Counted from the stretch's first letter, positions 7,138 to 64,000 are shown. The stretch is 64,000 nucleotides of DNA from Bugula neritina (GCA_964035545.1 OZ037766.1:10840722-10904721); one strand, 5' to 3'. The notes: generated by a model not told the origin, from the sequence alone. Program-made: numbers and translations.

Positions 7138-10100
7138 ATGGGGCGGGTGCTTTTGACACTGCATCTTCTACTATACTTTGCAGAGGTTTCTCTAATAATA
7201 TTTCTGTTGACAATGTTTTTACAAGATAGCTACTGGCGAATCACATTCTGCCTGTTACTTTTCAGCAGTTTCTTGAGCAATATATCATCCTATGCTAGAA
7301 TTGGTCAGACTATGGACTTCTACCACAAACCATGCGGTCTATTTACTTGTGCTCTTCTTCACATCTTACAGCTAGGACTCCTGTGGAGGTATATTAAGAT
7401 GTTAATCATGTATGAGGATGCCGACAGTCGAGATTTCATGTGTATTAGACTTCTTCACACCTGTTCATGTAGCGTACCTGTTTTACTCTGCATCATTTCC
7501 AAATATTTGGATAAAGACGAACAGCCTCTTTACATAGTTTTAGCTGCTGTGTGTTTCATGTCTTCAATTTTAACTTTTGCAACGTTCAGTCAGTTTAACG
7601 AGAACATTCATCATAGTATAAGTGCTGTACTTAGTACACTATTATGGAGGACATTCACATTATTTTCTCGTCTGTCAGCGCTGACTTTGTGTCTAATAAG
7701 CATACATGGCTTGTGGGCCTTGATGGTTCTTGGTGCTCATTTCATTGTCTTGATAATTTGGTATCAACTGCGAGAGCAATCTAAACAGGACAAATGTACC
7801 AAGCTGCGTATGTGGCTGTTGGTTTTAGCCTTCGCCGACACCATAGATTTAACTATTGCAAATTACAAAATTGGTATTGAATGGTTGGTAGGATATTATG
7901 CGACTATATTGTGCGAAAGTACTATAATAGTAATAATTCGGTACGCCTCACTCGAACAGCCTTACAATTCGCAAGACGCTCTATGGCTAGTGACTGTATT
8001 TGCCAGTTTGGCGCTCGGTTTACTACTTTCTCTGATCACTATGGTTCTCTCAGTCAAAGAGCAGAAGAAGACAACTCTGCAAAAAACTCTCAAGTGTTGC
8101 TGTCCTGGCTCACTGAGAGGACATTCAGATAAGTTACCATATGTCTGGGATTCATATGAAACGAAGAGGAAACCAACTTGCTATGCAAACAAAGCCTTTG
8201 AGTTTGAAGAAAGACAGAAACACGTAGATATTATCAACAACCCTCTCGGAGTGAGTGACGTTGTATCACTAAGTGCCAACACTACTCCTGGTGTGAGCAG
8301 CCCACACACCAACAAGAGCCACCTATCCTCACCCTTAGACCCACCAAGATCCTTAGCTCCAGCACTTGCAGACGATGCTGAAACTCAGAGACAGGTGATT
8401 GAATAAACTTTTAGTATGTTTAAAGGCTTCAGTGAGTATCAGAAGCTTGAATTCTTATACAATCCAGGGTTGGGGTAATTGTAATTTGTAATTGTAATTG
8501 GTTGTAATTAATTACATTTTTTCAAGTAATTGAATGTAATTTGTAATTGATGTATGGAAATGTAATTGTAATTGTAATTGTAATTAATTACATGTCTAAT
8601 GTAATTGATTTTTACAATTACTTTATAATTACATGTCAATTACTTCAAGCTTTAAAATCTTAAAAAATTCATATTCTTCCTACCATGCCCACTGTTAAAT
8701 AACAAGTTCAGACTAAGTCAATGTGATTATATAGTATTACTGATGAGAACAAAGGAGATTCACTACTGTCAAAATTGCCCCTGCTAATTGGAACCTAGAA
8801 GTGAAATTGCATAACTTCTATTTACACTGCTGTGAAAAGTTTAAGGACACCTCACTGTTTTTCCCAATAGCTATGTTCCACGCTAATTTTAAGACATAGC
8901 AAAAGCATTCCCATAGACATGGTGCCTATCAAAAAGATCCTTAAGATCTCCTTATTTCATTCATACAAATTATAAGTGTCTCTTTTTACGACCTCCCAAA
9001 ATTTGGGTGAAACAATGAGATACTATCCCTATATGGGAATTATTCGATGCTCTCACAATTTGTGTGTACTGTATGACATCAGAATATTTTACTTAAAATA
9101 TAGAAAAATATTATATGTGATTTGTCATACACCTTATAGCAGCATTGTACCACACAATGCACTCAATTTTAGTATCAATATTTTTTTGGCCAGCCTTTAT
9201 TCTTAATCACAAGTCGGCAGCGACGAGGCATCGACTCGTACAGCTTCTCCAACTTGTTTTGAGACACGACATGATGCCATGCATGAATTACAGACTCTAT
9301 GAGTGTCCCCTTAGTTGTTGGCTTCTTTGAGGAAACTATTTTAGCCATTCTTGACCCATAATTTTTTATAGGGTTCAAGTCAGGGCTTAGTGCCGGCCAG
9401 TTCAGCGTTTAGACCCTCAGCCTTTTCATCCACTCTTTAATAGTCTTCGCCCAATGGCATGGTGCTTTGTCATCTTGAAATAGGTCAATTTCATTTAAAA
9501 AAAGGTTTTTTACAATTGGAAGAAGTTTAGCATTGAGATTATCTATATATTTTTGGGTATTAACATCATTCCAGAGCAAATACTGAGTCGACCTACACCT
9601 TTTTGATGTCAAAAACAACCCCAGAACATAACACTGATTATAGCTTAACTGTTGTAAGTATACATTGGCGGCTATATTTCTCATACTGGTATCTTCTAAC
9701 ACAACAGTTTCCAGCATGAGCGTTCACATTAAATATGGATTCATCTGAAACAATTACTTTTTTTCTAATCATTACTTGTCTAACTACCATGCTCCCTGGC
9801 CCACCGTAAACGGCCTCTTTGCTGCTTCTCGGTTGGTAGAGGCTTCCTCTTGCTTTGCGGCCACGTAAACCATGGCTCAACAATCTTGCCTTATCATGGA
9901 TGTCGAATCTGGTGTTCCTGTTGATTCTGATCATTCCTTGCCAACTCAGGACTTGTTTTATGGCAATCCTTCTTGCTGATCCCAATGAGAACCTTGTCAT
10001 CTCTGGATGTGCTTATTTTTGGTCGTCCACTTCCAGGTCATCTGCTACACTTCCAGTCTCCATAAACTTCTTGATAATTTGATGTATGGTTGTCTTTGTT

Positions 10101-15500: not shown

Positions 15501-18500
15501 TCTCTATTTCATTGCAATTAAACATCTCACAACAGTCAAGTTATAACTATTATAATGTATTTTCTGCTGCAAAAATTTTTTTTACAATACTGCATGCACT
15601 TTTATCTAAAGACAATAAGAAAGGTGTTGCATTGAAACCAATTTTAACTTCTTTATAATTTCGTTTTTCTACATGATATAAGTTTGACTAATAATAACAT
15701 ATATTGCTAAAAAATTCATTTATAGTGTATAAATCAATAATGTATATGGCAGCACTGTTTTTTATGAAAATGCATAAAACAGGTGAATATGTAATGAAAA
15801 TGATGTCCAAACAATAGAAAGTAAAAGCTAATCATATTCATTCTGCTAAAACGGGTGCAAATCAAAACAGAAAATTAAAATCTCAAAACAACAACAATGG
15901 ATACCTTTCAAATGCAATCACACGATCACTTTTAGAAGTCATACTAAAGATATCAAAGCATAGCATGTTATAGTATAGCATGCTATAGTATGGTATGTTA
16001 TAGCATAGTATGTTATAGTATGGTATGTTATAGCATAGCATGTTATAGTATAGTATGTTATAGAATAGCATGTTATAGTATAGTATGTTATAGAATAGCA
16101 TGTTATAGTATAGTATGTTATAGAATAGCATGTTATAGTATAGTATGTTATAGAATAGCATGTTATAGCATAGCATGTTAAAGTAGAGCATGATGTAGCA
16201 TAGCATGTTATCTCTAGTAAAGCTAAAACATAATTACAAATTTATGGCTTTGCATTATAATGATGCAAGACAGCAGCTTAAAGCTTTAATAGTGTTAACT
16301 GTTATTAAAGTCCTTATATTTAAATCACAACAACTAGTGTAATTGCGAGTAAATATGTATATACATAAACTTAAACAACTCGCTTTCTGTTTTATAAAGT
16401 TACTGCAACTGCTGCTATACGTCAACAAGAGAGGAAAAGCTAATCACACTAGCTGCTAAAGCAAAGTGACTACTACGAATCTGAAGCTATCAGCACAAAT
16501 ACATTAATATGTTCTATTTAAAAAGGTGATAAGTGAAAAAACCTGTACCTTTTCAGAGCTTCTGCCTGCTGCAGCACATCTGGTTTGTAATTCATATCCG
16601 AATTTCCATCAAAATCGCTGCCAGTGGGTGATGACCTGGGAGCAGAGGTGGGAGATGTTCGCTGCCTCTCACTGGTCACACTCTCCACTCTCATCACAGG
16701 ATCTGCTGAAAACCATGTAAGTTATATTGCTATACAGCTTCACCTCAACAGCTGTTACTATGACTTTGTATGTGTAGTTTCAAATCAAACATTAATTTTT
16801 AAAATAAAACATATTTTATGAAACTTTACCATTGAAGCTCAATTATGGTCTCATCAGTTAATTATAGTTACTACTATATTTAATTAGAAGTTCTCAAAGT
16901 TACAGTTGTGGTGATTGGGATTATGCAAATTCAGTATTATTTATGTCAACTCATATAAAAATGTTGCTTTTTAAATATATGAAAGTCATATTTATATTAT
17001 CAATTTATGCAAGTTTATGCAATAATCTAATACCTTAGGAATTTATTGAAATTGCATGTAATTTGACTTGTAACTAGTTTTTTTAAACTAGATAAATACT
17101 GTGTAGATATTAATTAGATGCTAGGTAAATATAATATTGATAATAAATCATGTCAACTTAAATCAACACAGAATTTACTACAAACCATTATTAGCTGGTT
17201 GATCTTCAGGGGGTAGAGCTTCATTATTATTTTCTACAATTACAGTATTGTATTTTATTATAACCTATCTCAATAATGCATCAAATGTACTTCATTATGA
17301 ACTACAAATCTAACCAAAGTTTACATACTGTATATAACACAACAATCATGAAATATAGGGTGCTGTGGAAACAGGAAAGTTTGTCAAAATATGCTCTTCT
17401 AGAGTTTAAGAACGTGAAATTTGTCTGTATTTGCATGGAAAGTGGGGTGTTTTCAGTCATTTGTGCAAAACCTACCACCATAAAAAAATTAATGAATTAT
17501 ATATTACTTGAAAATACAGCTACCAATAATTATCTTTAGCAAAATAAATGTGGATTCAAAAATTTAAAATGTAGACACTGGATAGCATTGCAGGTAAATT
17601 GAAATAGACTAATTAGTCAACATATTTTGGCAAACAAAATTAAACCCAGTGACCAACCACAATTCTGATAGGAAAAAGCTAAATGAGTTTCAGATTTTCA
17701 AATAGTTTTGCAAATAAAATGTGCATGTCATAGGCAGTATTAGTTACCGTAGTAACTGAAAACACCCCACAATATAATTGGCTGAATAAACCAGCAAGCA
17801 AATATATAAGAGAAGGTAACACATCACAGCATTGCTTGGAGCATAGCATGAACAATACCAACTATCCAGTACCTACCATATCCCAAGACTGAAATAAGTA
17901 AAAAGAATCAATCAAATTTAAGTAAGACTAAGTACATCTAAAGTTTACTTTAAATGATACCAGATCTTACTAAAAACAGTGACACATGTCATTATATACT
18001 CTTGAATGTAGTGATACATTTGATCAATCAAAACAATTTTCACTTTTTCAAACTTCAAATGCTTTGGTTTAACTTTCATAGTTATAACTACAGACATACT
18101 CGTACTAAGCCAAGTACAAGAAGAACAAGATTTTACCTTCAGATGTACGCGGAAGTAGACCGGCATGTTTCCCTTCTACATCTTGTATTTTGCTATCATA
18201 ATATTCCCTTAATTTATTCATATCCTCTTCTAGTTTGGACTTATTCACTCTTTCTTCTTCATATTTAGATTTGAGTTCTTCAAGCTGCATTTCATACTCC
18301 TACCAAATCCACATGATGTGAACATGTTATCTTATAATGCATCGTATAACTCACGCCATAAATGACTATTTAAATTTTATGCAATTGTAAGAGAAAAGTT
18401 GAAGAAAATTGCAGTAATTGTAATTATCAACAGGTCCTGCCACTAAATCCCATTTATTTTGCACAAATTTCGCTTCGTCCAGAAAATCTTGCAAAGACAG

Positions 18501-21500: not shown

Positions 21501-24500
21501 AAGACTGAAAGCAATATACACAGCCATATATAATTTCTTTTATAAATACTTGAAAAATTAATCTACTGCAATATTATGCTATGGCTACAAACTGAACACT
21601 GCTCTTAACAGTGTCTGTGTGTCATAGAAAGCAGCACTTTATGTGAATGATGTTGAAGAAAACATGCAATGGTAAACTTAGTAGCCCATGAAAGAGATTT
21701 ATTAGCCTGTAGGTATTGCTAAGACAGCTGGCCGGAGTTACTAATGCTACAGTAAAACTCTATTTTTTAAATAAAAACAAATAAATATACTTGTTTAAGA
21801 TTTCTAACAAAACATGTTTTCTTTTAGGCTAGGTAGTTGCTGCTGATGTATCTTGATTCTGATTGTTATGTGAATGTCTTGAAATACGTCATACATCACA
21901 AACTGCATATAGCTGGCTCTTGTTTTAAAGTAAATGAGTGATTTGTGAATCAAAATTTTTACAATAGCTGCAGGAATCAATAAACTTTTGCACAACTAAA
22001 TTAAAGTCACATAACACTATTTAGTTTTGAGCCAGTTGTTAACTATGAGTGTGCAAAATATAGTATGAAGTAGTCTGGAGTTTTGTATAACATGATTGTA
22101 CTACACAGAAATCAATTAGCAGCATATTGTATGTTGATGCAAAATGTTTGAATAACACAGCTTAAGCTATTGAAAAACTTTATTAGCAGCTAATATACTA
22201 TTGAAAATCTGTCAACAGAAACAGAACAAATGAAAATACAAGCAATTAAAGCCAATGTACAGCTACTGCACCTTTGGAACAGCTGAAAGTTACTATTTAT
22301 CATTTGTGAGGTTTGTTTTGTGTCTGTTTAAAATGTATACAAAAAATAAAATTTGTCATAACAAGGCAACTGTATTGTATATTGTGTGTGAAATAGTATA
22401 CCAGCTAACTGTAGTCAAAACTACATGAAACACAGGCATGCTGCATAAATAGCAAGTTAATAATTAATATTATAATTTGTGTTTGTAGAAATATGCCACT
22501 ACAATTTAGTATGGTGGTTTCAAAAGTTTTTAATAAAAACCCAGCTTTCTGAAAACTTTTGTTAACTATTAGATCTGCAAATTAATTTTCATGAGTAAGT
22601 TATGGATACTATACAATACTGGGATACTATACAACACTGAGATACTATACAATACTGGGATACTATACAATACTGGGATACTATACAACACTGGGATACT
22701 ATACAACACTGAGATACTATACAACACTGGGATACTATACAATACTGGGATACTATACAATACTGGGATACTATACAATACTGAGATACTATACAATACT
22801 GAGATACTCTACAACACTGAGATACTATACAACACTGAGATACTATACAATACTGAGATACTATGCAATACTGAGATACTATACAGTACTGGGATACTAT
22901 ACAATACTGGGATACTATACAATACTGAGATACTATACAATACTGAGATACTATACAATACTGGGATACTATACAATACTGAGATACTATACAATACTGA
23001 GATACTCTACAACACTGAGATACTATACAATACTGAGATACTATACAACACTGAGATACTATATAATACAGAGATACTCTACAACACTGAGATACTATAC
23101 AACACTGAGATACTATACAACACTGAGATACTATACAATACTGAGATACTATACAACACTGAGATACTATACAACACTGAGATACTATACAACACTGAGA
23201 TACTATACAATACTGAGATACTATACAATACTGAGATACTATACAACACTGAGATACTATACAACACTGAGATACTATACAATACTGAGATACTATACAA
23301 TACTGAGATACTATACAACACTGAGATACACCAATGCATGTACAAATGCATAATGTTGCGTATCAAAGAATGAATATATTCAAAAACTTACCAGAAACAT
23401 AAACGCCCTTTTCAGGATGCTCCTTGAGATCTAACTTCTGTTTTGCATCTTTACCCAACAAATCTCTAACATCTTCATTATAAATCTCAAGGTAAGATGC
23501 ATGCACTAGGAATCTACACCCTTCTGTTACAGATATGGTCTCAAATATGTGATCAAATGCCCTGTGAACAACATAAAACATGTTTGTGGCTATCAAAATG
23601 ATTAAAATGTACTATAAGAAAAGGCAAGAGAAACCATGTCATGTTTACTATTGGCAATTGGATTGATAATTCTACAAGCAATGAACAAATATTACATAAC
23701 ATAACAAATGTTGAAAATAGAGACATCTCATATTACACAAATTATTCCATCTTCTTGAATAGAGAAAAGCATGCATGCATTAAAATTCAATTACTAAAGT
23801 AATGATAGACTATATGCATATAACTTTTCAAAAAAAATGGTCTTAATTTTTTTGATGCAACATATGGGTTAGTCGTCAATTAAAATTATTCAGTGTCCTT
23901 TTTAACATGAAAGTCGACTCAAACCAGCACAGGCTGGTGCAAGGTGTACCTTGGAATTATCCCTCGCTGACTTGCAGGGTCGGTGATGCCTTGCATACTA
24001 AAGGACTTTCCACACCCAGTTTGACCATAAGCAAATATGGTGCCATTATAACCTTCTGTCACGCCCTGTACAAAATAGGAAATCTCAAACTAGTAGTCAA
24101 TAATCAGCTGATTAGGCAAGAGAGACAACTTTGCAAGGTCAAATATTGTTTCACTTATAGCAAAACTTTTGACTTTATATTTAAGTGAATCATTTGTATA
24201 CTGTTAGCCTAATGCTACAGGCTTAGGATAATATACAATACAAAAACTAAATAATCATATTTCACTGTTTAAGGTTTGTTGTTACTACTGGTTGCTATTT
24301 ATAATATTACTGCATATTGATCAGCATATTGATTACCTTTGACATCACAACATAAGAAGATAATAATGACATAAGCAAATTCTAGTACTGGCTGAGGTGT
24401 ATTCTATATAAAATTAAAACAGCTGATTTGAAGGTGGAGCATTAAAGGCTACATATGTTTCTACATAAAATTAAACTGGAATTAGGTATTTATGTAAGTG

Positions 24501-46611: not shown

Positions 46612-46777
46612 TGGGCTGTCTTGAAAATTCTCTTTTATTCAACTAATAAATAAATTTTCTTCTAAATATAATAATGTGTCTCATCAAAATTAAAATTTAT
46701 GTAAGCATTTTGTTACAAATTATAATTAAATATTGAAATAGATATTTCCTTTTGAACCTGGTTCTTTAATGTTTCTT

Positions 46778-49700
46778 CTAGCCAATTACATTCTTCTGAC
46801 AAGTGCTTGTAGTGCCGTAAATGTTGCAGCAAAAGTTTTGGTCGTAGAACTTTCCAGTCCTGAGACTTGTGGTACAGGTAGATGGTCTAGATCTCACCAC
46901 AAAATCAATCTCTTTGGTAATGGATCTTCTCAACTTCTTGCAAATAGCTGAATCTATATAGAACACATTTAGAATTTGTAAAATGTTACTGTAATTTATG
47001 CCATAAATGTTTGGTAGAATTAAATTAATGAAGTGTTTTCAGGCTGAAAATATAACCACCTTTATATCTGAATAAAGTATTGGATGTTCATATATGGAGT
47101 TATAGATTTAAAGAAAATTAATGATGGAATCATAAATATTTGCAAATAATATATTATAGTTGGTGTAATCGAATAACACTCACCAATGCCAATAGTTCCA
47201 TAAGGTGTGATAGCAGCTTTTTTCTGTTTTACTACCTTTTCAACTGGAAAAATTATAATATAATATAAACTGAATATATATTAAACTGAAAATTATATAT
47301 GCCAAAATTGTCACCCACAAATACGAAGTGATTTCATATAGCACAAGTAGCATGTTGATCTAGACATTTCTATTGGCATTGCTATGGGGAACAACTATTG
47401 AAATCATTTCTAATCATGGTGTATGGAATTAAACCTGTAACCAACTTCTATAGTTAAGATAGCAGCATGTATATAGAAGCTATACTTACGTCTACTCTGA
47501 CACAGTGAATTGCAAATACTTGAGAAAGTTGTGCAGCTGTACCGGGTTGAAGCAACTGTTGGCTTGACCTTAAACTCATTCGATACATCAGAAGCTCGAA
47601 TATTTTGAAATATGGTAGAATATCCACTATATCTTAATCCAACATAGCAGTCACAACTGTAATAGTAAAAATTATTTTATATTACTCAGTGACTTATATA
47701 ATGTAGATATTTTAACCATGATTTCTTGAACTATGATTGCTTATATATGTTACACACATATATATAAGTAGTCTACTATAAGCATGTTATAGGTACTTCC
47801 TCTATAAAGTGTACCAATATTTGCCATGAAAATTTCCTTGAATATGGTTGGTGTAGAATAGCTGAATAACTAACCTGGCTCTGTAGACTGTTGACGGCTT
47901 TTTAGTGCTTGCATTGGGCCTGTAGGTGCTGTTGAAGGGTTTGTAGGTGGTGCTAAAGTAAGGCTTGTCGGTTGTATTAGAAGGGTAGTATGTGCTTCCC
48001 GATCCAGCTTTGCATCTTCTATAATAACTGCTAGTACCTCCTGAGCAGCAGAAGTTATAATCCAGTGTTCGGATGTACGAGCGGTATCGTGAGTTAGAAC
48101 ATTGCCAGTTGTCTAGCACACTGTACAGCTTTAGTTGAGAGGACTTGCCAGTGTAGTAGATGGGCTTGTATATTCTTCTACAGGCATTATTCTCTGCAAT
48201 ATCATCAACAAACTTAATGCATACTACTGAATATATGGTATTACTAATAATAATATTCAGTTCATACTATAGAATGATAATACAAACTGCAATAACAATC
48301 TCAATATCTTTTAGTAAATTTCATCAAATAAGTTAGTATGTAGTATTATTTATATTAATATAAATGTTCTGTGTATAATTATTAAACTTACTTATTCCAG
48401 TTACAAGGTTAGTATTGAGAGGCAATCCAGAAACTGGCTTCACAACTAAAATAAATTTAACATTAGTGGTTTTCATAGCTGTTGGGCACAACTTTGGTAC
48501 CCACAATAAATATCCACAATATTACAACTACATACCCCCAATAAACGCCCACAATAATAATTGTATAATTTGTTAAGTTAATTATAGCAATGCCCAAGCT
48601 ACACAGGATAGTTAAGGGCAACCTTTTAGCTGCAACTGCCTTGCTGAGGTTTGCATTGTAATCATATAAGAATTCAGTACCAGTAAAATAAAATCTCACC
48701 TAATTGTGCTTATAGAGTCAAAATTTAAAAACTATGTTGTAGATCTTGTTTTTCCCCAGTGCAACTTTTTTGGAAATTTCAATTTTCATTTTTTTTGCAA
48801 AGTTATAGACAAAAAACTGCCCAATTTTGGCCAATTTTGCCAGAAAAGCTGACTTTTCAGTACCAGTAAAATATCTCAGCAGCAAAAGATGATATCTGAA
48901 TAAAAATTGCACTGCTGGAATCCTGAGATATTTCTCCAGTGCATCTTTTTTTCATTTTCCAATAACTCTGCTAGATTGCCCATAAATTGGTGATTTATAC
49001 ACTGAAAATGCCATATTTTTTCATAAGAAACTAGCAGCGCGCAGTGCTTCACGCTTCAATGAGCACTTAGGGATGAGAAGATATTGGCGCGTACATGCTA
49101 ATTATAGGCTTGCTAGCTGGCAGGCTATTATGAATAGCTCGCTTTGTACTTTGTTTATGTAGCACCCATAATGGAATGTTGATAGATAACGCAGCCCTAA
49201 TGAAGGTTGTTGCTCATTGGCTGTAGTTTAATCTTAGGCTAAACAAATGCAAGTAGGCAACACGCATGCCACCCGCAGAGCAATATTATTCTAGAACCTG
49301 AACTACATTTTGAGAGAAATTTATGATATTCTTAGTGAGGATGCCCTTAACTATCCTGTGTAAGTCTCTCCATGCTTTCTTATAGCATGATCACTGCCTT
49401 CTTCCACATTTTTAATTTAATCTCGGAAAATTTTTGCTATGAGTGGCGGCATTATTCGCTATGGGAAGGGTTAGAATAAACATGTGATCAATATTTATTC
49501 CAAGGATATAATACAGCTCTACAAAATGGTGAATATTTAGCTCTTTTATGTTTGAAATTTGTTAATGTTACCAGATTTCACAATATAGGCCAACTATTTG
49601 CACAGACATCATCTAAATTCTCAAATTTTTGAATATTAAGATTACATGAGTTTTAAAAAATAATTGATCTAATTGAAAACTGTTGAAGTTACATGGCAAG

Positions 49701-52700
49701 ACTGCATATGCTATACACTCAACACAACCTATAAACTTATAAATGGTTACCTGCTTATACAAAACAACATACAATAGCATACGAGCAACTATTAGCATTA
49801 CAATTCAACTTTAACTTAGTGTAAAATAGTTGGAAATGCATACCAAATCTGGTGCAGCTTTGTTTGCAGAGTTGCTGTGCCGGGTAGCACCCCTTGGTGA
49901 ACGATACAGTGACCGTGTAGGCAGCTGACAGCAGCTGCTCCACTCCGTTGTTTATATACACAGGAACACACTGACATCTTCAAACAAAGTAGTTTCTAGT
50001 TCACCATGATGTCTTATATGCAGCAGCTTGAACATTTTATGCTTTACAAGGATTCTCATTTTTTCATATAATTGGCTGAATTGACTTACTTTATGGTCTG
50101 AGATGATTTTGGAGTTGTGGAATAGTAAGGAGTAGATCTGCAATCAGCAATTAAAATTAAGCAAGTTTATGATTATAATAATTCATCTTTAGTAACTATA
50201 AACCTGATTTATGAAATATAAATATTCTACTATGTTGCATCAGCAATTATTGCGACCTTCTAATATATCTGCTTAGGCCTATACATGTATAATAGATGTA
50301 TTGCCAACATATAGTAATTGAGGCTTACTTTGTAGTGTAGATTTTAGGGGGTCTGCTTGCTGTCGTGTAAGAGGCATCACATTTCTTGGTATATCTCTTA
50401 TTGTTACAGCAAAAGTAACCAGTATCCAGGGTGGCCACAATCGATGATGTCATGTTGGTGCATGTCTTCAAATCTGAAGTAAGTAACAGCTTTGCTCTGT
50501 TCCCCGAGTAGATGTTCTTTTCTACCCCACAGATTCTGTCACCTTGAATTATAAAATTACGAGAGTTGAAAGCATCCTTCGCTTAAAAGTGAGTAAAACA
50601 GATTTGCTATAAAAAGTTAATTATCAGCATTTTTAATGAGTTTTAGCTACTTTCAGGTGATAGACGTGGAAAAGTCTTGCTAGTAATTCATTGACTGAAT
50701 CATCTAAATAATGCTGCAAAGTGGCATGCAGACATATCAGCTGCTTAACTATGTTTATTGCAGTTTTTGAGATAAATCTTGATGCAGCATTTTAGCAGAA
50801 ACTAGATTTTTAAAATTTTTCCCTTATTTGTAGCATGTAATGTCAAATTTAAGTTGTATAACAAAAATGTGATCAACTGCACATAATGTCACGATGTAAC
50901 TAAATACACATGGGACGTACCTACAGATCTGCCAAAGTAACTGGATGAGAATGGATCAGACTTTGTGTAAGAGTAGGTATTGGCTCCAGATCGCATGAGG
51001 TTCCTATACTGATTGGCTGTTAAAAACGCAAAGCGAATAATATTAGTTTATAGTTGGTATTAAAACTCTAATAATTAGAGAAGAAGACTTTTTGAGGTGT
51101 TGTCTGTATAATTTATAACAATTATATTTGTGAATCTTGGAACTGTCCATAAAAAGAGTTAACAAATTGAGTAAATAATTAGTGTTATAACGACATATTT
51201 ATGAAAGAGAAAATTATTGTCTAGACGTCACAGTAAAATTTTTTTATCTATTACTAGTTAACAGCAGCCTAATGTTAACATTGACATGTAGCTCAGTAAC
51301 ATCTCATGCAGATGCTGAACTCTTTTTATATTAAAAAATAGTTAATTAGACAAACTTGCTGAACTAGTATACTTGTTCAAATAGGCTGTGTTGTATGATG
51401 TAACATTACCACTAATAGTATACCAGATGCTATACTAAAGAAATGTTTCAACGGTGAAAATGAAAATGCTAAAAAATGGCTTACTGGTTTTGCAATATTG
51501 CTTGCATTTTTGCATGCCTGCATCACAGTCTTCAGAAGAGAGAATTGTGATATTAGTAGGCGGTGGGAGAGCTGTTCCAATAAACGTGTCGCCATAGTTT
51601 TTGAACACGGTCAGCACGCATTTACACCTTAAAGCAAAGTATTATACATAATTTACTGTAATATATCTACAAAAATAGTTCATTATCATTTTAATTTCAT
51701 TTTCAATCAAATGAATTCTTCATTAGAACAGCGGAGGAAGGTAAAGGCTGCTAAAATCTTAGACTTCACTCATAATGCACCAAAATTTTTCCCAAATAAT
51801 GAAATTCATCAACTGAGAAAATGCTGTAGAAAATATTCTACAGTATCCTCTACATATAGTCTACAGTATACTCTACAGTACATCTTACACTCTACAGTAT
51901 TTCCTACAGTATATACTACAGTGCACTCTACAGTATATTATATAATACACAGATGCAATTATAATTACTAGTTCCATTATTACATGGCTGTATATTGTTG
52001 CACTGAGTGCGTCTTCAATCTCTTAATTCAGATAAAGAAGTAATATAATGAGATGACTTACGGCAGCACTCGAGGTGGCCTGCTGCACTTTATATTTTGC
52101 CCTTTTCCATCACAGCAGAAATTCTTTTCCAGTAAGTGAACCTCTTGGGGTCTAAACCCACATTGAGGGAGGTGGCTGTATACATACAACTCGGCCCCAT
52201 CTCCAAGCAACTTCGACTTGTAATCTTCACATACAAACTCACCTGTAAATCAATTGAAAAGTATAAAGGAAAAAAACTCATCTTAAATTGTACAATATAG
52301 GCATTTAAAATAGTAGTAATAATTACATATTATTATAATTATAATAGTATTATACATTATTAATTGAAAATGTATGTGAAACTTTTAAATCATACTATAA
52401 TAATAAGAAACACTATGCTGTAACTACAACTAGCCTATTGTTCCTTGGAGCTTAGGTCTTTGGGAAACTGGAATCTTTAACAACTTAAGGAAGTCTTGTC
52501 GAACAATAATCTGTCTCAAGCCACCAATATTGTTCACACGAGTTTTCACATCTGGAAACATATTAGCTAACTGTAACATGTGTAACTACAATGAAAACAT
52601 ATGTAGCTACATTGAAAACATGTGTAACTACAATGAACACATGTGTAACTACAAACAAAGCAATGTAATTATAAGGGGAACATAATATAAAGAATTCTTT

Positions 52701-55700
52701 TTTAAAACTAGCTATCTACAATTTTTGAAATTTTAGTAATAATACATAAATTAAGAAATACTTTTTACTTTTTTTATGGATTAATGCACAGAAAAAGGCA
52801 TTTGTAGTCTATTCAAAATATATGTTCTCATAAATGCACTTTATGATAGAAATATTTCTGCTTTGCTGTTGTGAAAATCTATGTTTTGTCTCAAAAGCAG
52901 CTAATTCATGGAAATAATTAGTTTTGTTGCAAAACAAAAGACTATGTTCTCTCATGAGCATCAATGTCTGCGAACATCAAAACAATGTGGTGCCATTGTT
53001 ATTATTTTACCACCAACTCCTTCACCATTTGTCAATGGTTCCTAATTTACCGAGCTAGCTATTTTTAAAAAACTATTATATACCTTTGCATATGCAGTAG
53101 TTAATAAAAGTTTAAAAACTTTTCTAAAAACATAGCTATTCTACGTGTCAATTATTTGGCAACTTATAGAGATTTTTAAAAAAGCGGTTTTTGCAACAAA
53201 ATGGTACATGCTTTGTTGAAAAACGTGAAAAGGTAAATTTCAGAAGTAAAAACTGCTTATGCTATTACATTAGTACTTGTATATAAACATTATAACACAA
53301 AGTACTGGACAAATAAAAGTATAGCTGGTCTTGGAAATACATACACTCTATATGCATAACTGGAAGAACGGAGACTATGCAAATTGAAGTTAATAGTTTC
53401 CTTTGTAAACTATTTTCAGTCCTTAAAATATAGTCAAACTTACACAATTTGCAGAAAGCATCACATTTTTCTTTAGCAGCTAAGCAAGGATCTTTGAACA
53501 CATCTGGGATATTAATAGTGTAGGTACCCTCTGGCAATGCATTTGGAAAGTCTCTCAACAGTTGGTGTGAGCCATCTTGTTCAAATCCCAAGGAACAAGT
53601 GCAGTCCAGTGAAGTGCTTTGTTTGCTAGGCATAGTAGAAGCTGGAGTTTTGGTAGCTTTTGTGGTAGGTTTAAACTTAGCAGTAGTTGTAGTGTCAGGC
53701 TCATCAACAGTTGTAGTTTCAAGTTCTTTAACAGTTGTAATCTCAGATTTTCCACGAGTTGTAGTTCCAGGTTCTTCAACAGTTGTAGTTTCAGGTTCTT
53801 CAACAGTTGTTATCTCAGGTTCTTCAACAGTTGTAGTTTCAGATTCTTTAACAGTTGTAGTTTCAAGTTCTTCAACGGTTGTAGTTTCAAGTTCTTTAAC
53901 AGTTGTAATTTCAGGTTTTCCAAGAGTTGTAGTTTTAGGCTCTTCAACAGTTGTAGCTTCAGGTTCTTCAACAGTTGTTATCTCAGGTTCTTCAACAGTT
54001 GTAGTTTTAGGCTCTTCAACAGTTGTAGCTTCAGGTTCTTCAACAGTTGTAGTTTCAAGTTCTTCAACGGTTGTAGTTTCAAGTTCTTTAACAGTTGTAA
54101 TTTCAGGTTTTCCAAGAGTTGTAGTTTTAGGCTCTTCAACAGTTGTAGCTTCAGGTTCTTCAACAGTTGTTATCTCAGGTTCTTCAACAGTTGTAGTTTT
54201 AGGCTCTTCAACAGTTGTAGCTTCAGGTTCTTCAACAGTTGTAGTTTCAGGTTCTTCAACAGTTGTAGTTTCAGGTTCTTCAACAGTTGTAGTTTCAGGT
54301 TTTTCAACAGTTGTAGTTTCAGGTTCTTCAACAGTTGTTATCTCAGGTTCTTCAACAGTTGTAGTTTCAGATTCTTTAACAGTTGTAGTTTCAAGTTCTT
54401 CAACGGTTGTAGTTTCAAGTTCTTTAACAGTTGTAATTTCAGGTTTTCCAAGAGTTATAGTTTTAGGCTCTTCAACAGTCGTAGCTTCAGGTTCTTCAAC
54501 AGTTGTAGTGTCGTCTATGATTGATTCAGCTGTAGTTGTGCTTGCTGAACCAGCTGTAGATACACCATCATCACTTGTACCGTGGTCGATCTCTGTAGTG
54601 GTAAAGTCTTGCTCAACAGAATGAGTTACTTCCAGATCTGGAGTGGTGGGTTCGTCAGAGATTGTGGGAGGTTTTACTGGCCAAATGATTTCCTCATCAG
54701 ATTCCTTGGACTCTATATAGGTTGTCAAGAACACATGAATTAGCCTTTTAACTTTTGACTTTCTTTCTGACAAATAGTGTTGCATACATAATGAAACAAA
54801 TGGATATGTAGGCTAAAAATGTAACCTACATGTATTATAGTACAGATGCGTGTTACAGTAAGAAAGACAACATATTGTTGCAATACATGCCAGGGAACAA
54901 ACCAATTTTACACAGTATACATATCAGACATTTTTTATAGTCCCAAACCATGATTTTTGCCAGGCAAACTGTTTCCCCCTCATCCCTCCTCCGCTAATTT
55001 TATCTAAACTTGGGAAAGCCACTTTTGTTGATTCATACTTTTATTTGACCAAATTATTAATTTTATAGCTGCCTTCTGACAAGCCTATTTATATGTGCTA
55101 TGGAGCAAATATGTTCTACTTTGTTAAGTAATGAAATGTGGGAATGTGGTAAACATAGTAAATAATGAAATTAGATTTTCCTTATAATAATTGAATATCT
55201 GCAGAAAGCTTCAACAATACCCCATGTATAACTACCCAAGTTGTGAACCTTGAATCTCTTGAAAATTCCTGATTTAATTTTCATTAGCTGCTATGTGAAC
55301 TATGAGATTTGCATTGCTCAAGAGTAACTGTGTATAAGAAATACTTATAGATCCAAAAAAGTAATTACAAAAACGAATAAACTTATTCAAACTTTTTATT
55401 TGTTTTGAAAAGCTAAAATATATAATTAAGATTTTACTTTGGTCTAACTTCTCTATATTCTAAATATAGATACATGACTGACAATTGGAATGAGGATGTG
55501 CACTTTGATACAAATTTTCAAAAAATATAGGCCCTTGGCCTTTGGCTCTTGTCAACACCTACTCACTTGTACTGTAGTCGAATAAGAAGTTGGTTTCTTT
55601 TCCAAAATTTTGAGAGCCATGGCTAAACCTTATTTTACATCTAGAAGTTTCCTCGTCAAATTGCAATGGCATTGAAACACCTTCGGTGTTCTTCCCACAG

Positions 55701-57933
55701 TAATAGGGAAGAGAAAAGAAGGCGGTCTCTTCAAAGTTGTTCGACTCGTATACTACTTGAACCAGTTCATCACAGCTGGTATTTATTGCCTAAAGATAAA
55801 ACATGTTGAAATTTTAATAATTTTGAATATAGCTTTTTGTAAATATATTTAATTAGCCACATGCTAGAAATTACAAAATTGCATTTTTAGTGTTGCAAAT
55901 AGGGCTGAAAATTATAATATCACATGAAAGTTGTTTTTTACAAATACAGTAGCAGCTTGCAATGTTTGAATTACAGTTAATTAACATACTATATTTTCAT
56001 TATTCACATATTAAGAAGAAAAGAGGGGTCTAGGGGTTAGAGCACTGGCCTAGTAAACATAAGGTCAGTGGTTCGAATTCTATAAGTAAACGTCATTGGA
56101 TATGTTAGGAAGAGCATCCAATTATAAAATTTATTCCTTTGCTACAATAAATAAAAGTCCTTAGTCCGCTAAAAAACCAGTCTATTACGGTTTCTCGCTG
56201 GGATGGTAACTACAAACCCATGCATGAGTGTTCTTTTACTTAGTAAAAAGTTCCTATACATCCAATAATTTAGGTAAGGGGTCTCTTTTGAGGCAGGCAT
56301 TCTTATAACAAATGGTAGCACGCGGAGAAGTAGATTGAGATGATATTTATAAATTTAAGTTGCATATAGTCAAACTAGGCTAACAAGCTCAGTAGTAAAA
56401 AGGTAGGAAATTTTAAAAAGCATGTAACACTTCTCAGACAAATAAGATATCCCTAATTTAAACCCTTACTCTTGTTTATATATTTATTAAACAAACAAAT
56501 ATATATTTTTATCTATTGCAAAAGTCAATATAAATTAATTTGTAATAAAAAATATTAAAAATTTAAGCTTTACATTTGAAATATAATTCATATAGCTAGG
56601 TATTGTAAGAAAATTTATTTTTTGGCCAATAAAAATATAATTGTATTTATTGTATTCATCTACTGACGCATGACATAGCATTAAGCATGAGCATGACGAG
56701 CCCCATTTAATGTTGAGATACTAAGAAGCGCTATAATTCAGTATAAAATTGTTACCAGCAGACGTAGATGAAGGGAAAGTCTTTTACCAGCCTCCACGGT
56801 AACTTCACAGTCATCAGGTATATTTGGCACTTGGTTTTCATCACTAGGGAAGAGTCTTATGAATCCATTGATAGAATAATCACCCACAGATACAGTTTTG
56901 CCACAATTGTTAGCCACAATCACTGAAAACCCAAAAAAAGTAATCAAAGAATAACAAAAAATAGTAAATTAATAAAAATTAAAGTTCCCGAATAGTTTCC
57001 TTCAGTTGAAAAAAAGGTAAAAGCGTCTAAAGAATTGAAATTTATAGTGCAATTTTAATTGTAGCTGTCCTAAAACAAAAATGGCTTACTGCGATTATTT
57101 ATTGTCACTTTTATGTAGAAAAACAAGCTCAACAAATATAGATTAAAGCACCATTCTTGTATATATGTACATTTCTCCTTATAATATAATATAAGATGTG
57201 AAACAAAAACAATATTTCTAGGAGCAATTAAAGAAACAATATATTAGAATAATAATGTTGTGTGTCTTTTATACATTATTAGAAGTTAAAACATAAACTA
57301 AAACTTTATATTAATTTGGCTAATAAGTGATTATTTTCAAATACTTGGTGATATAATAGGCTTTTATCCACTATTGGTCACCTCCATTTAAATGAACTAA
57401 AATTTATCGCTAACTGTTTCGAATTCTGATAATGATATTTCATAGCAGAGTTTATATCTGAACATCCTTTTTACTAATCAGAGTCTTTTGTCACATTGTA
57501 GGAAGCACTGTTATCAACTTGTCATAACACTAATATGATTGGCATTCTGCTAGTTTTTATTCAACGAAATTACCAAGACTGGTTATGTAATGGTAAGTTA
57601 GAAAAACGTCCTGCAGCTATAAGTGCTGCCAAATATTTGTCTTACATATACATGAAAATCCGCGAAAAATAATGCAAGCAAAAAGATTTTTGCTAGTAGT
57701 AGCCAAATCAGAGATATGATTGATATTAGATCAATGGACTTAAAATACAGAAAGTATGAGTAGCAGGTTTTGATCCGGTCTGCATGCATAAACTTAAATA
57801 TATCTATATTAATCTGTCATATAACTGCTGTGTATAATATTTGAATGTGGTATATAAGTACGTGGTACCTACCATCAGCTTTACCTTGACCTACTAATAG
57901 ACAGCCAACTGCCAAAATGGTGATGAGCTTCAT
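46778..57933 (-). CDS. Secreted protein A (~1126 aa): signal peptide, CUB-like domain, acidic Thr/Glu mucin repeat, 4 x 10-Cys module. Exons 57873-57933, 56756-56922, 55567-55789, 53444-54712, 52435-52551, 52062-52242, 51485-51627, 50921-51016, 50329-50542, 49844-49977, 48392-48445, 47875-48193, 47490-47656, 47184-47243, 46778-46953
   Basis: Signal peptide MKLITILAVGCLLVGQGKA. CUB-like pattern NCG..GFI..P..C.V.V.AGKRLSL..SCDELV..YCG..IRF..F.Y. The 15 exons sum to 3381 nt (a multiple of 3) with no internal stops. One GC donor; no TM segment. Confidence 0.82.
48602..49360. mobile_element. MITE with TA target duplication (Tc1/mariner-type non-autonomous)
   Basis: Perfect 19-bp TIR CACAGGATAGTTAAGGGCA / TGCCCTTAACTATCCTGTG, flanked by TA on both sides. 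Internal direct repeat TTCAGTACCAGTAAAATA. Confidence 0.85.
51835..51937. repeat. Short degenerate tandem repeat (CTACAGTAT..)n
   Basis: ~6-7 CTACAGTA units at ~14-bp spacing. Confidence 0.7.
52575..52653. repeat. 21-bp tandem repeat (ACATGTGTAACTACAATGAAA), ~4 copies
   Basis: Visible directly. Confidence 0.8.
53683..54510 (-). repeat. Coding 24-bp tandem repeat (TTVEEPET-type octapeptide, ~34 units) in gene A
   Basis: (TTCAACAGTTGTAGTTTCAGGTTC)n variants on the + strand, in frame within exon 53444-54712. Confidence 0.95.
56024..56238 (+). mobile_element. tRNA-derived SINE, copy 2 (intron of gene A)
   Basis: Head GTCTAGGGGTTAGAGCACTGGCC, B box GGTTCGAATTC, core ATGTTAGGAAGAGCATCC, tail GCATGAGTGTTCTTTT. 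Confidence 0.8.
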
Positions 57934-58449: not shown

Positions 58450-61400
58450 CTACCCCCAGACATTCTTATTGTAACAGGAAGTAGTATCAAAACCATCGCA
58501 ACAGAATTGTGAATCGAATATAGCTCCATCGTCTACAGCACTTCCACATTCAGATGGTCTCGATTGCATGACAAGGTTGATAGGGGTGTTTACTTCATAG
58601 CCCAGGTTTGAACAGATGGCAGATTCTGGAAGCAACATCATACTATTTACTTCATTATAATGCTACACCACAAGAGATATGAATATGAGTATGAATGTAT
58701 GAATATAATTCCAAAGGGAGTAGCCGTGGTGCAGTGGTTAGAGCAATGCCTTCACATTTCACTAAGCCAGCGGTTTGAGTGCACTTCATCGATGATGTTA
58801 GGAAGAGCATTCTGTCATAATTGCTCCTGTGCCACATATAAATAAATCAACAGCCCACTTTGAAAAATGCCCTTTCTAACAGAGGTTCTCACAGGGACAG
58901 TGACTCTAAACTTGCATGAGTTTTTGTAAATGTCATTCAAATAAATTTCTCTCTAGTAGGTTAAAAAGCAGTGACTATAAGTTTAAGCAAATTTGTAGAC
59001 CTCAAAATACTAATGTTCTAAATCTTAGATAGTAAGAGAGACCTACCATAAAATGGCATATCTTCATCAATCACAAATCTTTCCACTACAACAATAGAAT
59101 TTATAAAACTTGACACAAATTAAAGTAACCCATCAAAATAAGCAATAAAATACACGATTATTGGTTTTCCTAAAATACTGAATTGAAATAATATAGGTGA
59201 CTTATGAGCATTACAAACTGGCGGCCTTTCGATAATAATTTTGTAGTGCATATTAATTTTAAAGTAATTTTTGCTGATTCTCCAAATTAAATTTTACCAA
59301 ACCTACCTTTTTGCTGGCATTTAACTTGGCAGATGTCACGAGCTTCACCACAATTGCGCACTTTAGACGTGCTGACGGAAGGAAAACCACCAACAATATC
59401 TGATACTCTCATAGAGTCAAAGCTAGCATGAAATGTATTCTCATACTGAAGGCCAACAGAACAAATGCATCTAAAAATTATATAATATATCGTAGTATAC
59501 TATAGCAATATATTTTATAAATTGACTTGCTAAATTTTAAGCAGGTAAGTAAATAACAAAAAATTATCTGGTCAAAAATTTGCATGTGCTAAACTCTGAT
59601 GTTGGCTCTTTGAGTTGTTTAACTGGAAGCTCAAGATATTATTTTAGTAAAAAAAGTAATCCATAAAAATTTCCCCAGTCTTAAATTTTATGCTACAAAA
59701 CTTTATTATAATATAAGATTATGTTTACATCCAAACTAAGTTAACTTATAATAATGTAGAAATTTAATCCAGTTGATTTCTATTTTTCAAAGATACATAC
59801 CAAACAACCGGATTATAAAGCATGCCATTCAACTAAAATATTGAAAATGCATTTTGAAAAAGTTTTTTTTACTAAAACATACTTGTATTTTTTTAGTCCT
59901 TTTGCCCTCTTAGTAGTAGGGGGGTCAGTGTAATACATGAACGGCGTTGTAGTGTATTGGTCAAGTAGAGACTGACAGCTAGTGTAATATGGGTCACGGT
60001 ATGGCAAGAGGTTTCCGTAGAAATCATTCGTCCAATCATATTGGGCAAACTGGTCATGATGTCCTCCAGCGCAGCAAAAATCTTTTTTCAAAACTTGGAC
60101 CAGCGTCTGATGATGTACATTACGGCACTGTACGTTATCCAATGCGCTATAAACTTCCAATATTGAAAGATCTTTTCCCACATCTGGATTGAACTGAGTG
60201 TTTATTTTTGTACACACGTCATTGGCTGCAAAACGTTGAAATCTAAGCATTATTTGACTTTAAATAATTTATTAACAGTTAAATATTATTGCCTTAGGTC
60301 ATCACAATTATAAAAGATATCAATAGATTGAGAGTAGAAAACACTTGGTTAATGCTTTCTAAAGAACTGCAGAAACATTAGACATCTGTTAACTTACACC
60401 AATTTTGTATTTTTATAATTTGATTATGTGCAACAAAATATTTATAATAGCTTACCAATTTTTTCAACTAGTAAAGCAGGATCTTGAGGTTTCTTGCCAG
60501 CTAGCCCATTCACTGCAAAATGTTTATGTTTATGTTTAATACACAAAATACAATCTATATTGAAAGTAGAGATAAAATCTAAAGTTGCGTTTATACCTTC
60601 ACGATTTTCGGTCAAAAATTCAATTTGGCCGGGTTGAAATTTCTCCGAGTTGCATTGCATTGTAAAAGCCACTCGTTGAAATTTTTGTACTGCGATAACT
60701 TAATCGGCCAATTTTAGAATAGGAGTAATAACTCCTTGTAAACATCGTTATTTAGTTATTACTTTGGCGATTAAACAACGTACTTATACGGTTATAATTA
60801 TATAGCCTACGCCTTCTCAATTATCGCTTTTATGCTTTCCGCTTCACTAATTCACGACGTTTACAAAGGGCATCAAATAGCTATTATGCGAGTCAAATTT
60901 CAATTTCGAAAAGTGAGCAACCGCATCAATATGATTTCAACGAGTTTCAGCTTGACTATAAAGGGGTACCCGGACAAGCATTATTAACTTAAACTCGGTA
61001 CTTTTTTCAGCAGAGGTATAAACGCAACTTTATGTTGTTAGAATTAAACTAGTAGTTTTACACGGAAATATTTGAAGCAAAGTAAGAACTTTTAGTGCAA
61101 CATAAATATAAGTTAGATTATGGATAGCACTTCCATACTGTTCAGTGCTGCACGCATAGAATTAGCCTAAAATCAAGACTCGGCTACAACAGATTCTCAA
61201 GTGAAACCTTATTTCTGTGTAAAGTCTTGATTGCACACCATTATATGCTTACAAAACTTGAGACACTGTTGCTGACACTGGCTTTCTGCAGATGAACAAG
61301 ATGAGAAGGGTATGTCAGCAGTATAGACGGGATAAAATCTTCTCTCCTTGTTGAATTTCTTAGTTCCATTATAATATACTGGAACACACTTACACCTATT

Positions 61401-63737
61401 ATAAAAATACAACCAAAACAAATCTAACAACGATGCATTCTATTATGCATATACACTATACAGTAATATGTGGTTTTGATTCTAAAATTCCAAATTAGTA
61501 TCATAATCAATATTTTTATTTTGAAAAAAAATTAAGTTAAATAAATTATAACACCCTATCTTAAGCAATTTGAGTGCCTAAAATTAGTTTCCAAGAAAAA
61601 TTTGTTAAGCATTCATGACAGCCTCGCAAAGCTTGCACAATTTGCTAATTTTGAAACTTGCTGTTTAATTTAATTCCATAAATATAAAAACCGACACAAC
61701 CTACAAGTGATTGTTTTCAGTAAACATAAGGAAAAGCTAAATGAAATCATATTTGGTTCATTTTCTTAAAAGTATTATTTGTGAAAAATAAAAAGAACTA
61801 AATCAAATTTGATATTAAAATTCAAACTTGCAATATAACCAATTACCATCCAGGAATTGCACTACAATTAGCTGTGATTGGCCAAAGCTTGATTGTAAAA
61901 CTAGGTCAACTTTCTGTTGATTGCAGGCCATTCAATACAATGGCTTCTTTCTAGGGCCACAAAAATTTGTCAAAGCGTACTATTCTATGGTGGCAATAAT
62001 ATTTTCAACCCAATATCGAAACTTGCCTACATGAGCGTAGTAATAAAAGAAATATAACAAATTGCGGTACTTACTTTATGGTACCGGTTGGAGAGGGGGG
62101 TGTAGTAGTACTTGTAAATTTCACAGACGTTTCACTAGTGGGTTTGGTTCTCAAACTAAAATATTAAAAACATACCAGATGACAACTTGCTTGTTATTAT
62201 GACAAAAATATTGTTCTAATCATTACTAAGTAAAACATACTGTAAAACACCATTTAAAATTTCTGAAAAAGCTACAATGAGTTGGAATTTGTTTTATGAT
62301 CAATTCATAAAAAAAATTACTTTACTTTAAATAATGTATTATTTTAAATACTTTATATAGCACATAATTCTTAAACTATTGAGACATAGTGTCAACCAGT
62401 TTACTTTGCCCTGACCTTGTAGATGGTACTGTCGTAGTGAAACAAGGCACACGATTTCCTTTGTCATTGCAACAGAAATTGTTTTCTATTTGGTGTACTT
62501 GAAGTGGGTCAGCAGTACATTGGGGAAGATGGCTGAAGACATGCAGTTTGACTCCTGGAGCTGTTATTGTTTTGTTGTAGTCTTCACAGACAGAGTCACC
62601 TGGTTCCAACAAGTATGTATATCAAAGTTAATGCTAAGCTTACATTCATTACCTTATTTACTATTCCTAGCATTAAAACAACAAACTCAGCTTGAAAAGT
62701 GGAAAACATCCTTTACTTCTAGCCAGCCTCTTATAACTAATTTGCTTATTTTTACTATATATACATATATACAATATATAAAACCAAGAAGCTATTATTA
62801 CTCTAAAATTTACAATTTGTTGTTGCAATTGCTTGGGGTTTTGTTATATACGCTTGTGCAATTTCTATAGTATTGTAACTTATTTTTAAAATCATGTTTA
62901 ATAGTGCAAGAAAAATAGTTAGAAGTAGGATTTTTTTATTTTGCAATCACCAGTTCAGATTTTATGAAATAGTTGTATAGCACAAGAAGTTACTCCATCC
63001 ACTAACTGAAAAGTCCTAGATCCAAACTCCGAGTTAAGAGACAAAATATGGTAGCTATAAAAATTCAGTTGTTAAATATGTCGTGAATTGTGGCACATAA
63101 TATATAACCTTGACTTTGTGGTTATTTATTTAACATAGGTTTCAGCTTCTTTCTGTTTTAATTGAATGTAACCACTAATTAGAAAAAACTCAACTTCATT
63201 TAAAGTCCCTAATCCTGTAAGAAACTCTGATGGTAGGAGTTTTATGCAGCCTTATAGGGGCAGTGCTGCTCAAACCACTTTAGTTGGGTTTCGGGTAGTT
63301 CAAAGTAGTACAGCAGGAATGATGACTGCACCAATAAATCACTATGAATTCGCACTTATGAACTAGTGTGTAGGCTAAGCCAGTGCTTTAATTACCAATA
63401 TGCACTGAGGCTGTTCTCTGAATGGCCATTTATGAAATACTAAATATAAATAAATTGCTAAACTTGAAAGCAATGTTAAAAGTCTCAGTTTTTTTAAAAT
63501 CAAATACGATATACAACATTTTAATAATATTATATTTAATAATTATGTGCCATGCTTAAACCATACGCTGCATAAAACAATATTATAGCTGCTTATTATG
63601 TGTCATAATAAATAAAATACCTAGAGGCTTCAGCAGCTGGGGTCGCTGACTGGGGTCAAGTTGAAGGTACTTGAGGAAGTCATTCCTTGTGACAATCATA
63701 TCCAAATCGTCACTACTGCTCACCCTTGTAACAACGT
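58450..63737 (-). CDS. Protein B, tandem paralog of A (5' part lies beyond the window). Exons 63621-63737, 62416-62599, 62075-62155, 61253-61395, 60456-60512, 59883-60225, 59307-59470, 59047-59085, 58450-58625
   Basis: Exon-by-exon similarity to gene A (VCEDY..SHLPQC..NFCC; CKCVPVY; YSALDNVQC..DFCCAGG; SAIC..SRPSEC..QFCC..KNVWG*) with matching intron phases. Confidence 0.85.
58716..58925 (+). mobile_element. tRNA-derived SINE, copy 3 (last intron of gene B)
   Basis: A box TGGTGCAGTGG, degenerate B box GGTTTGAGTGC, core GATGTTAGGAAGAGCATTCTGTCATAATTGCTCCTGTGCCACA, tail AAACTTGCATGAGTTTTT. Confidence 0.82.
60580..61032. mobile_element. MITE with ~18-bp TIRs and a CpG-rich interior, in an intron of gene B
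   Basis: TAAAGTTGCGTTTATACC ... GGTATAAACGCAACTTTA form a perfect inverted pair. TSD is either TA or a degenerate TTAA; superfamily uncertain. Confidence 0.8.
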
Positions 63738-64000
63738 CTGCAAATAAATTCATAACTGCTATACCAATTTTGCATCACATCTCTTTTTTTCTGTAAAATT
63801 ATATGTTATTTTGGATAACCAGCTTTAATCTAGTTTTATATAGTAGTATGACTTGTTTGGCAATCGTCTTACATAATCTGACGTAGCAGTATAATACTAA
63901 ATTAAGCATTTTATACTTTAGTCTGATGCAAGAGTGCAACCACAACATGATTTTCCACAAATAAATACATTTTTAGGCAGTTTTAATTTTGAATAATTTG

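Follow-up and report, generated by a model that had tools for sequence, protein, structure and literature searches.

A 16-exon gene of the bryozoan Bugula neritina that very probably encodes a secreted mucin-like protein with four copies of a ten-cysteine module

Bryozoans rank among the major fouling organisms, and hardly anything is known of the proteins that make up their mucus, cuticle, or larval cement. A minus-strand locus of Bugula neritina, in which one cysteine-rich module recurs four times, raises the question of what kind of protein it encodes and whether the module belongs to a described domain family. The locus, termed gene A, occupies positions 46778-57933 of the 64,000-nucleotide (nt) stretch of DNA analysed here (the window; G000:C2:10840722-10904721 of the 216-Mb genome), which is AT-rich (approximately 32% G+C) and has introns of eukaryotic type. 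An earlier note, made from the sequence alone, had described the product as a secreted CUB-mucin protein with four tandem ten-cysteine modules (R1 to R4) resembling the insect follicle cell protein 3C (Fcp3C). In our assessment, gene A is very probably a genuine, expressed gene of 16 exons, encoding a secreted mucin-like glycoprotein with a domain of CUB-like cysteine spacing, an acidic stalk, and four undescribed modules.

The reading frame opens with an ATG at 57931-57933, continues into a typical signal peptide, and closes with a TAG at 46778-46780; the summed exon lengths (3429 nt) give 1142 residues plus the stop. The signal peptide is followed by an N-terminal domain with four cysteines, an acidic threonine-rich repeat stalk, and the four ten-cysteine modules. 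After the last cysteine (C10), the protein has no transmembrane segment, anchor, or hydrophobic tail. Every motif quoted earlier for R1 to R4 was found on the minus strand at the coordinates given for it; the signal peptide, stalk composition, and module alignment likewise bear out the earlier view that the product is secreted and multi-domain, with an acidic mucin region and one module repeated four times. The public annotation of an earlier assembly breaks gene A into several short 'hypothetical proteins'. Two of them, EB796_023053 (P0006 in our searches) and EB796_023054 of B. neritina, are 98-100% identical to parts of gene A, and the present gene model replaces these fragments.

A model with two exons per module (a and b) was first derived from splice sites and phases, before any comparison with RNA. 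RNA contigs from public runs were then compared with window positions 46701-52700. Runs X1, X2, and X4, which stem from at least two studies, contain spliced contigs (one of them 1925 nt long) that link the whole exon series R1x to R4b. Each predicted boundary is matched by a joint, and the splice sites are GT-AG throughout with one GC-AG exception. The earlier splice reading, reconstructed from the quoted motifs as two exons per module, is incomplete and in part contradicted by RNA, which adds four further exons: R2x, R3x, R4x, and a linker exon at 50090-50137. The middle exon of module 1, R1x, was first noticed through conservation between gene A and its neighbour gene B, and the RNA contigs confirm it. 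These micro-exons carry no cysteine, so the ten-cysteine skeleton quoted earlier stays unchanged, and with them the chain from module 1 to the end is in frame with a single terminal stop (local frame check). Three runs have spliced contigs that confirm the GC-AG intron behind R1x (52243-52434, donor GCTAGT), whose homologue in gene B begins with an ordinary GT donor (63621). At the joint 51016/51488, the contig contains three 'other letters', which we explain as a single-base difference beside the junction. Exons 1 to 4 have canonical splice sites, with positions and phases the same as in gene B, including the exon 1 donor and the 'YST/K' junction into the mucin exon (slash at the exon joint). 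The annotated protein P0006 contains, at residues ~93-100, an extra eight-residue piece (ICYFCSHF) between R3a and R3x. This piece was found neither in the RNA contigs nor in the window, and a similar open reading frame lies near position 706 in an intron of a contig of a sibling lineage (L009); it is likely an annotation artefact, or else a lineage-specific exon.

When the seven modules of the locus are aligned (four of gene A, three of gene B), ten cysteines are invariant or nearly so, and a serine and an F/Y-C-C motif are conserved. Their skeleton is CxC ... C x6-7 C x3 C in the a-half and C ... C ... F/Y-CC ... C in the b-half. The gene A modules are 124-145 residues long, and each is encoded by three exons: an a exon that begins in phase 2 and ends in phase 1, a cysteine-free x exon with phase 1 at both ends, and a b exon that ends in phase 2. 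This symmetric exon-phase cassette explains how the modules became duplicated. The x exons contribute 17-39 poorly conserved residues, which are likely to make up a variable loop that connects C5 with C6. When the 216-Mb genome was searched with either half-module profile, exactly seven copies were returned (E = 4e-9 to 4e-23), and neither profile found an eighth at E <= 1. The recurrence of the module is far beyond chance. MAFFT repeatedly aligned b-halves onto a-halves, which prompted an hhalign test of internal duplication; the two halves were rejected as internal duplicates (probability 0.1%). Two AlphaFold2 models of the module were of low confidence, with a predicted local distance difference test score (pLDDT) of 49 from a shallow 22-row alignment and 39 from a single sequence. 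Both predict a long helix at the C x6-7 C x3 C segment, and searches with the first model against the PDB (Foldseek) and the ESM Atlas (shape) returned only noise.

Gene B lies directly upstream of gene A as a tandem paralogue of the same build, strand, and intron phases, with three modules and a strongly basic stalk. Pairwise identities are 43-46% for A1 and B1, 34-40% for A3 and B2, and 31-42% for A4 and B3, and the only counterpart of A2 (38%) lies on L004, an 8.1-kb eukaryote-type contig of a more distant species. From this pairing it follows that the four modules are older than the A/B duplication and that gene B lacks the second one. L004 carries the b-half of module 1 and three further modules in the same order. 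Its protein also occurs on contigs with record names starting BRYA16. Exons homologous to R1x are present at 63622-63735 of gene B and at L008:81-182 of another species. Among the x-exon counterparts sought in gene B and on L004, only that of R3x in L004 is convincing (candidate at L004:3786-3824), and scanning metagenomes with the R1b alignment added just two contigs, again at 43% identity. Closer to gene A, the genomic contig L009 (2576 nt) of the sibling lineage has exons 92-98% identical to those of gene A and introns 86% identical with large indels; the linker micro-exon is 98% identical, against 86% for introns. Over 295 codons, the synonymous divergence (dS) is 0.17 and the nonsynonymous divergence (dN) 0.026 (dN/dS 0.15), with zero stops and all 19 covered cysteines kept (19/19). 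Gene A is under purifying selection.

The stalk of gene A (53604-54710) comprises 369 residues, of which 30% are threonine and 9% proline, with an isoelectric point (pI) of 4.05 and a net charge of -75. That of gene B (L002:1247-2452) has a pI of 12.0 and a net charge of +64, contains 42% threonine and 22% proline, and is built of TTKP/TTRP/TTQP 4-mers. Both consist of long tandem repeats rich in threonine, serine, and proline, as in mucin-type (PTS) sequences, and the gene A stalk, being of mucin type, is presumably O-glycosylated. The linkers between modules (47918-48030, 50090-50137, and 50329-50380) are rich in tyrosine, lysine, proline, threonine, and serine, with, for example, six tyrosines and five lysines in 46 residues; such a composition recalls marine adhesive and tanned-matrix proteins. 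Gene A resembles secreted mucin-like matrix proteins, including invertebrate mucins and CUB-containing proteins, in its signal peptide, its threonine/proline tandem repeat flanked by disulfide-rich domains, the absence of a membrane anchor, and its symmetric-phase exon cassettes. Unlike in mucins, VWD, C8, TIL, CTCK, SEA, and trefoil domains were not detected in gene A by Pfam (single exons and complete modules), the cysteine module is uncatalogued, and the stalk is unusually acidic, with a basic stalk in the paralogue.

The CUB domain (PF00431) has about 110 residues and four conserved cysteines (bonded 1-2 and 3-4) and starts with CG. The N-terminal domain of gene A, of ~125 residues, shares four cysteines with gene B at spacings of 33, 23, and 25 residues, together with 'CG'/'CA' and 'Y/F-x-CG' motifs and, by eye, an alternating hydrophobic pattern. 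Compared by eye with the CUB consensus, it agrees with CUB in length, in the four cysteines, and in the CG start; over ~120 residues, it also has a second 'YxCG' before the last third. The domain is split by an intron, and exons 2 and 3, searched singly against Pfam, the PDB (sequence profile), and the ESM Atlas, gave no usable CUB match. The label 'CUB-like' of the earlier note agrees with the cysteine spacing and the CG start, and CUB identity is plausible.

Single exons were searched against the databases individually, and complete modules were searched as P0002:42-174 (R4, from an NCBI protein) and P0006:44-183 (R3). Pfam returned nothing significant for ten single exons or half-modules, nor for the complete modules, and a family profile of 14 sequences found nothing in the PDB by sequence at E <= 10. 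By these results the module belongs to no catalogued domain, in line with the earlier note, by which its spacing does not fit EGF, WSC, PAN, C-lectin, vWC, or TSP1. In a search of 1.84 billion protein cluster representatives, the b-half profile gave nine matches, six of them real. Each of the six is a short fragment of gene A, gene B, or a close relative, and most of the contigs of the relatives come from bryozoan-labelled metagenomes. P0007 and P0009, also among the nine, are spurious FCC or low-complexity matches. A protein homologue search with the module alignment retrieved only EB796_023053, EB796_023054, and one fragment; homologue searches with exon 4 for a longer annotated or RNA-derived protein retrieved nothing, and a named Bugula protein of this kind was not found in the literature. 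As judged by sequence, the module is an undescribed, lineage-restricted family of extracellular domains, occurring in gene A, gene B, and their relatives only.

A wider kinship of the module has to be weighed against this result. The earlier note proposed a cysteine order like that of Fcp3C, a putative resemblance. Fcp3C presumably belongs to DUF4773 (PF15998). This family (118 model positions, gathering score 27 bits) showed no match at E <= 10 in hmmscan of the two complete modules or of the half-module exons, gave zero candidates in a six-frame search of the whole genome, and was absent among the 30 nearest ESM Atlas structures. The resemblance to Fcp3C is thus unsupported, and a link has a low probability. 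Fcp3C/DUF4773 proteins and the module are alike in being secreted and cysteine-rich, and the 118 positions of PF15998 compare with the 124-145 residues of the module. The Fcp3C of Nilaparvata lugens is a single small insect protein of 175 residues required for chorion formation, with orthologues reported only in insects (PMC5493777), whereas the bryozoan protein of gene A has 1142 residues, with four module copies that follow a mucin stalk, and is no small single-domain secreted insect protein. DUF4773 proteins have been reported from the skin mucus of octopus, the haemocytes of oysters, and the pleuropodia of locusts (PMC11431876; PMC12064177; PMC6966819). Small secreted proteins across the protostomes, perhaps with Fcp3C among them, could still form a family of which the module is a divergent, multi-copy representative, in which case gene A would encode an egg-coat or envelope-type matrix protein. 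What favours this is the ESM Atlas, besides the similarly small size of the N. lugens protein and the cysteine order that the earlier note gave for Fcp3C. The Atlas model of P0002 (pLDDT 0.70, predicted template modelling score 0.67) has as its nearest cluster by language-model features a set of 119-residue arthropod proteins (0.91; 206/256 shared). By shape, arthropod clusters of 156 and 119 residues are neighbours, with template modelling (TM) scores of 0.68/0.60 and 0.63/0.69, and the neighbours further include a 159-residue arthropod cluster and a 115-residue mollusc cluster (0.85). However, none of these clusters has a Pfam family, and they are known by scores and not by alignment; the two Atlas searches count as a single source of evidence, in which scores of 0.9 arise by chance in 4-10% of decoys. 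The 1.84 billion representatives yielded zero arthropod or mollusc proteins to the b-half profile, and with the PF15998 results and the insect-only orthologues this makes a protostome-wide family rather unlikely. The Atlas neighbours may serve as a lead. Should they be genuinely related, the module would establish a new secreted domain spread across protostomes; otherwise it adds to the many cysteine-rich domains confined to one lineage, which is of use for annotation and unsurprising.

Another family relation is hinted at by module R4. The ectodomains of activin and transforming growth factor beta (TGF-beta) receptors also have ten cysteines, a CxC at the start, and a CC...C at the end, and the module or its b-half might be a divergent three-finger domain of this or the Ly6/uPAR type. 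In the PDB, R4 matched the type-1 TGF-beta receptor ectodomain below threshold (E = 0.05-0.08, 17 bits) over residues 86-119, a stretch that includes C7 and the CC pair; in Pfam, it matched Activin_recp weakly (PF01064; 13.1 bits, E = 0.2, below the 20.9-bit cut-off). These matches are specific to R4: the other modules score nothing, and the 14-sequence profile has no match in the PDB. The module is moreover ~50 residues longer than the ectodomain (124-145 against ~80), and the helix predicted at C x6-7 C x3 C, albeit in low-confidence models, has no counterpart in three-finger folds. We regard a three-finger origin as very improbable. The locus might, finally, be a decaying or mis-assembled repeat whose open frames form no functional gene, as the short annotated fragments EB796_023053 and EB796_023054 could suggest. 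Against this stand the spliced transcripts in three runs, a frame open through 12 verified junctions, the dN/dS of 0.15, and an architecture kept in the paralogue and in another species; the chance of decay is negligible, and in our view it is already refuted.

Several points nevertheless weigh against the reading of gene A as a secreted mucin-like glycoprotein gene. The runs are labelled 'RNA?', and their mRNA origin is argued from the spliced form itself. Exons 1 to 4 lie beyond the stretch compared with RNA and are placed by splice sites and the parallel with gene B. No tool backs the CUB assignment, the fold of the module depends on the two low-confidence AlphaFold2 models, and function is deduced from composition.

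With these reservations, the gene A protein would be a structural component of a secreted matrix, such as mucus, cuticle, or an adhesive. Binding or cross-linking would fall to its heads, namely the N-terminal domain and the compact modules with their ten cysteines, and the glycosylated stalk would act as an extended, hydrated, and highly charged spacer. Because genes A and B combine the same heads (the four-cysteine domain and the ten-cysteine modules) with stalks of opposite charge (-75 and +64), they might form a matched polyanion/polycation pair and, if secreted together, a two-component complex-coacervate gel or adhesive, for example in a larval cement or cuticle matrix. We hold this unlikely. 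In such a pair, the tyrosine/lysine/proline-rich linkers and cysteine modules may provide cross-linking or substrate binding. The neighbouring, oppositely charged paralogue suggests a testable two-component material, and the locus adds an extracellular domain family that is missing from the catalogues and is cleanly built of three-exon cassettes. The coordinates of both genes are listed in Table 1; for gene B, L002 coordinate x corresponds to window position 63000 + x.

Table 1. Exons and other features of gene A and its tandem paralogue gene B (window coordinates unless prefixed)
Feature	Coordinates	Strand	Basis or remark
Exon 1: start codon and signal peptide (20 codons + 1 base)	57873..57933	-	Sequence; phase-1 donor GTAGGT; 'GAT G/GT' donor (slash at the exon joint) also in gene B
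Exon 2: CUB-like domain, first half (Cys1 in 'CG' start, Cys2)	56756..56922	-	Phases 1 in/0 out, as in gene B
Exon 3: CUB-like domain, second half (Cys3, Cys4 in 'YxCG')	55567..55789	-	35% identical to gene B counterpart
Exon 4: acidic threonine-rich mucin stalk and R1 a-half (53444-53603: CxC ... C x6 C x3 C)	53444..54712	-	1269 nt
Tandem repeat within exon 4: 34.4 copies of a 24-nt unit (8 residues, VEEPETTT-type)	53685..54509	-	Tandem Repeats Finder
R1x: module 1 cysteine-free middle exon, 39 codons, then GC-AG intron	52435..52551	-	RNA joint 52241/52434; contig piece 52434-52549
R1b: module 1 b-half (C6, C7, FCC, C10) and short linker	52062..52242	-	RNA joints; alignment
R2a: module 2 a-half	51485..51627	-	RNA joints; alignment
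R2x: module 2 cysteine-free middle exon, 96 nt	50921..51016	-	RNA joints 50540(+2)/50919(+2), 51016/51488; canonical AG and GT sites
R2b: module 2 b-half and start of tyrosine/threonine/proline/lysine-rich linker	50329..50542	-	RNA joints; open frame
Linker micro-exon between modules 2 and 3, 48 nt, serine/threonine/proline/tyrosine-rich	50090..50137	-	RNA joints 49977/50090, 50137/50329
R3a: module 3 a-half	49844..49977	-	RNA joints; open frame
R3x: module 3 cysteine-free middle exon, 54 nt	48392..48445	-	RNA joints 48193/48392, 48445/49844
R3b: module 3 b-half and 46-residue tyrosine/threonine/serine/proline/lysine-rich linker	47875..48193	-	RNA joints; open frame
R4a: module 4 a-half	47490..47656	-	RNA joints; open frame
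R4x: module 4 cysteine-free middle exon, 60 nt	47184..47243	-	RNA joints 46953/47184, 47243/47490; also in NCBI protein P0002
R4b: module 4 b-half and stop codon (TAG 46778-46780)	46778..46953	-	RNA joints; open frame
Gene B 3' part, three modules	58450..64000	-	Tandem paralogue, directly upstream of gene A
Gene B, B3b	58453-58623	-	
Gene B, B3a	59308-59469	-	
Gene B, B2b	59885-60223	-	
Gene B, B2a	61254-61394	-	
Gene B, linker exon	~62077-62157	-	
Gene B, B1b	62418-62597	-	
Gene B, B1x	63622-63735	-	
Gene B 5' exons (signal peptide, CUB-like domain, basic TTKP/TTRP mucin, B1a)	L002:1085-4177		Beyond window end

The remainder of the window holds unrelated genes, for example a multi-pass membrane protein at 7096-8406 and kinesin-motor exons at ~19.5-25.5 kb, so the module family is confined to the gene A/B pair. 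A ribosomal protein S12-like coding exon (L003:9606-9986, minus strand), ~29 kb past the window end and upstream of gene B, is likewise unrelated. Long simple tandem repeats at 22591-23373, 15883-16206, and 2293-2627 (ILYNT, MLxYN, and SLTIHL units) have open frames, yet they are non-coding satellites. Two introns of gene A contain elements of their own. At 48500-49500, in the 1398-nt intron that separates R3a from R3x, contig depth over a repeated element is very high in each of the four runs (thousands-fold in X1) and loose ends are numerous; the element is probably an abundant, possibly transcribed, interspersed repeat. In intron 2, the minus strand at 56020-56210 carries a tRNA-like sequence that resembles a tRNA-derived short interspersed nuclear element and includes GGTTCGAATTC in reverse orientation.

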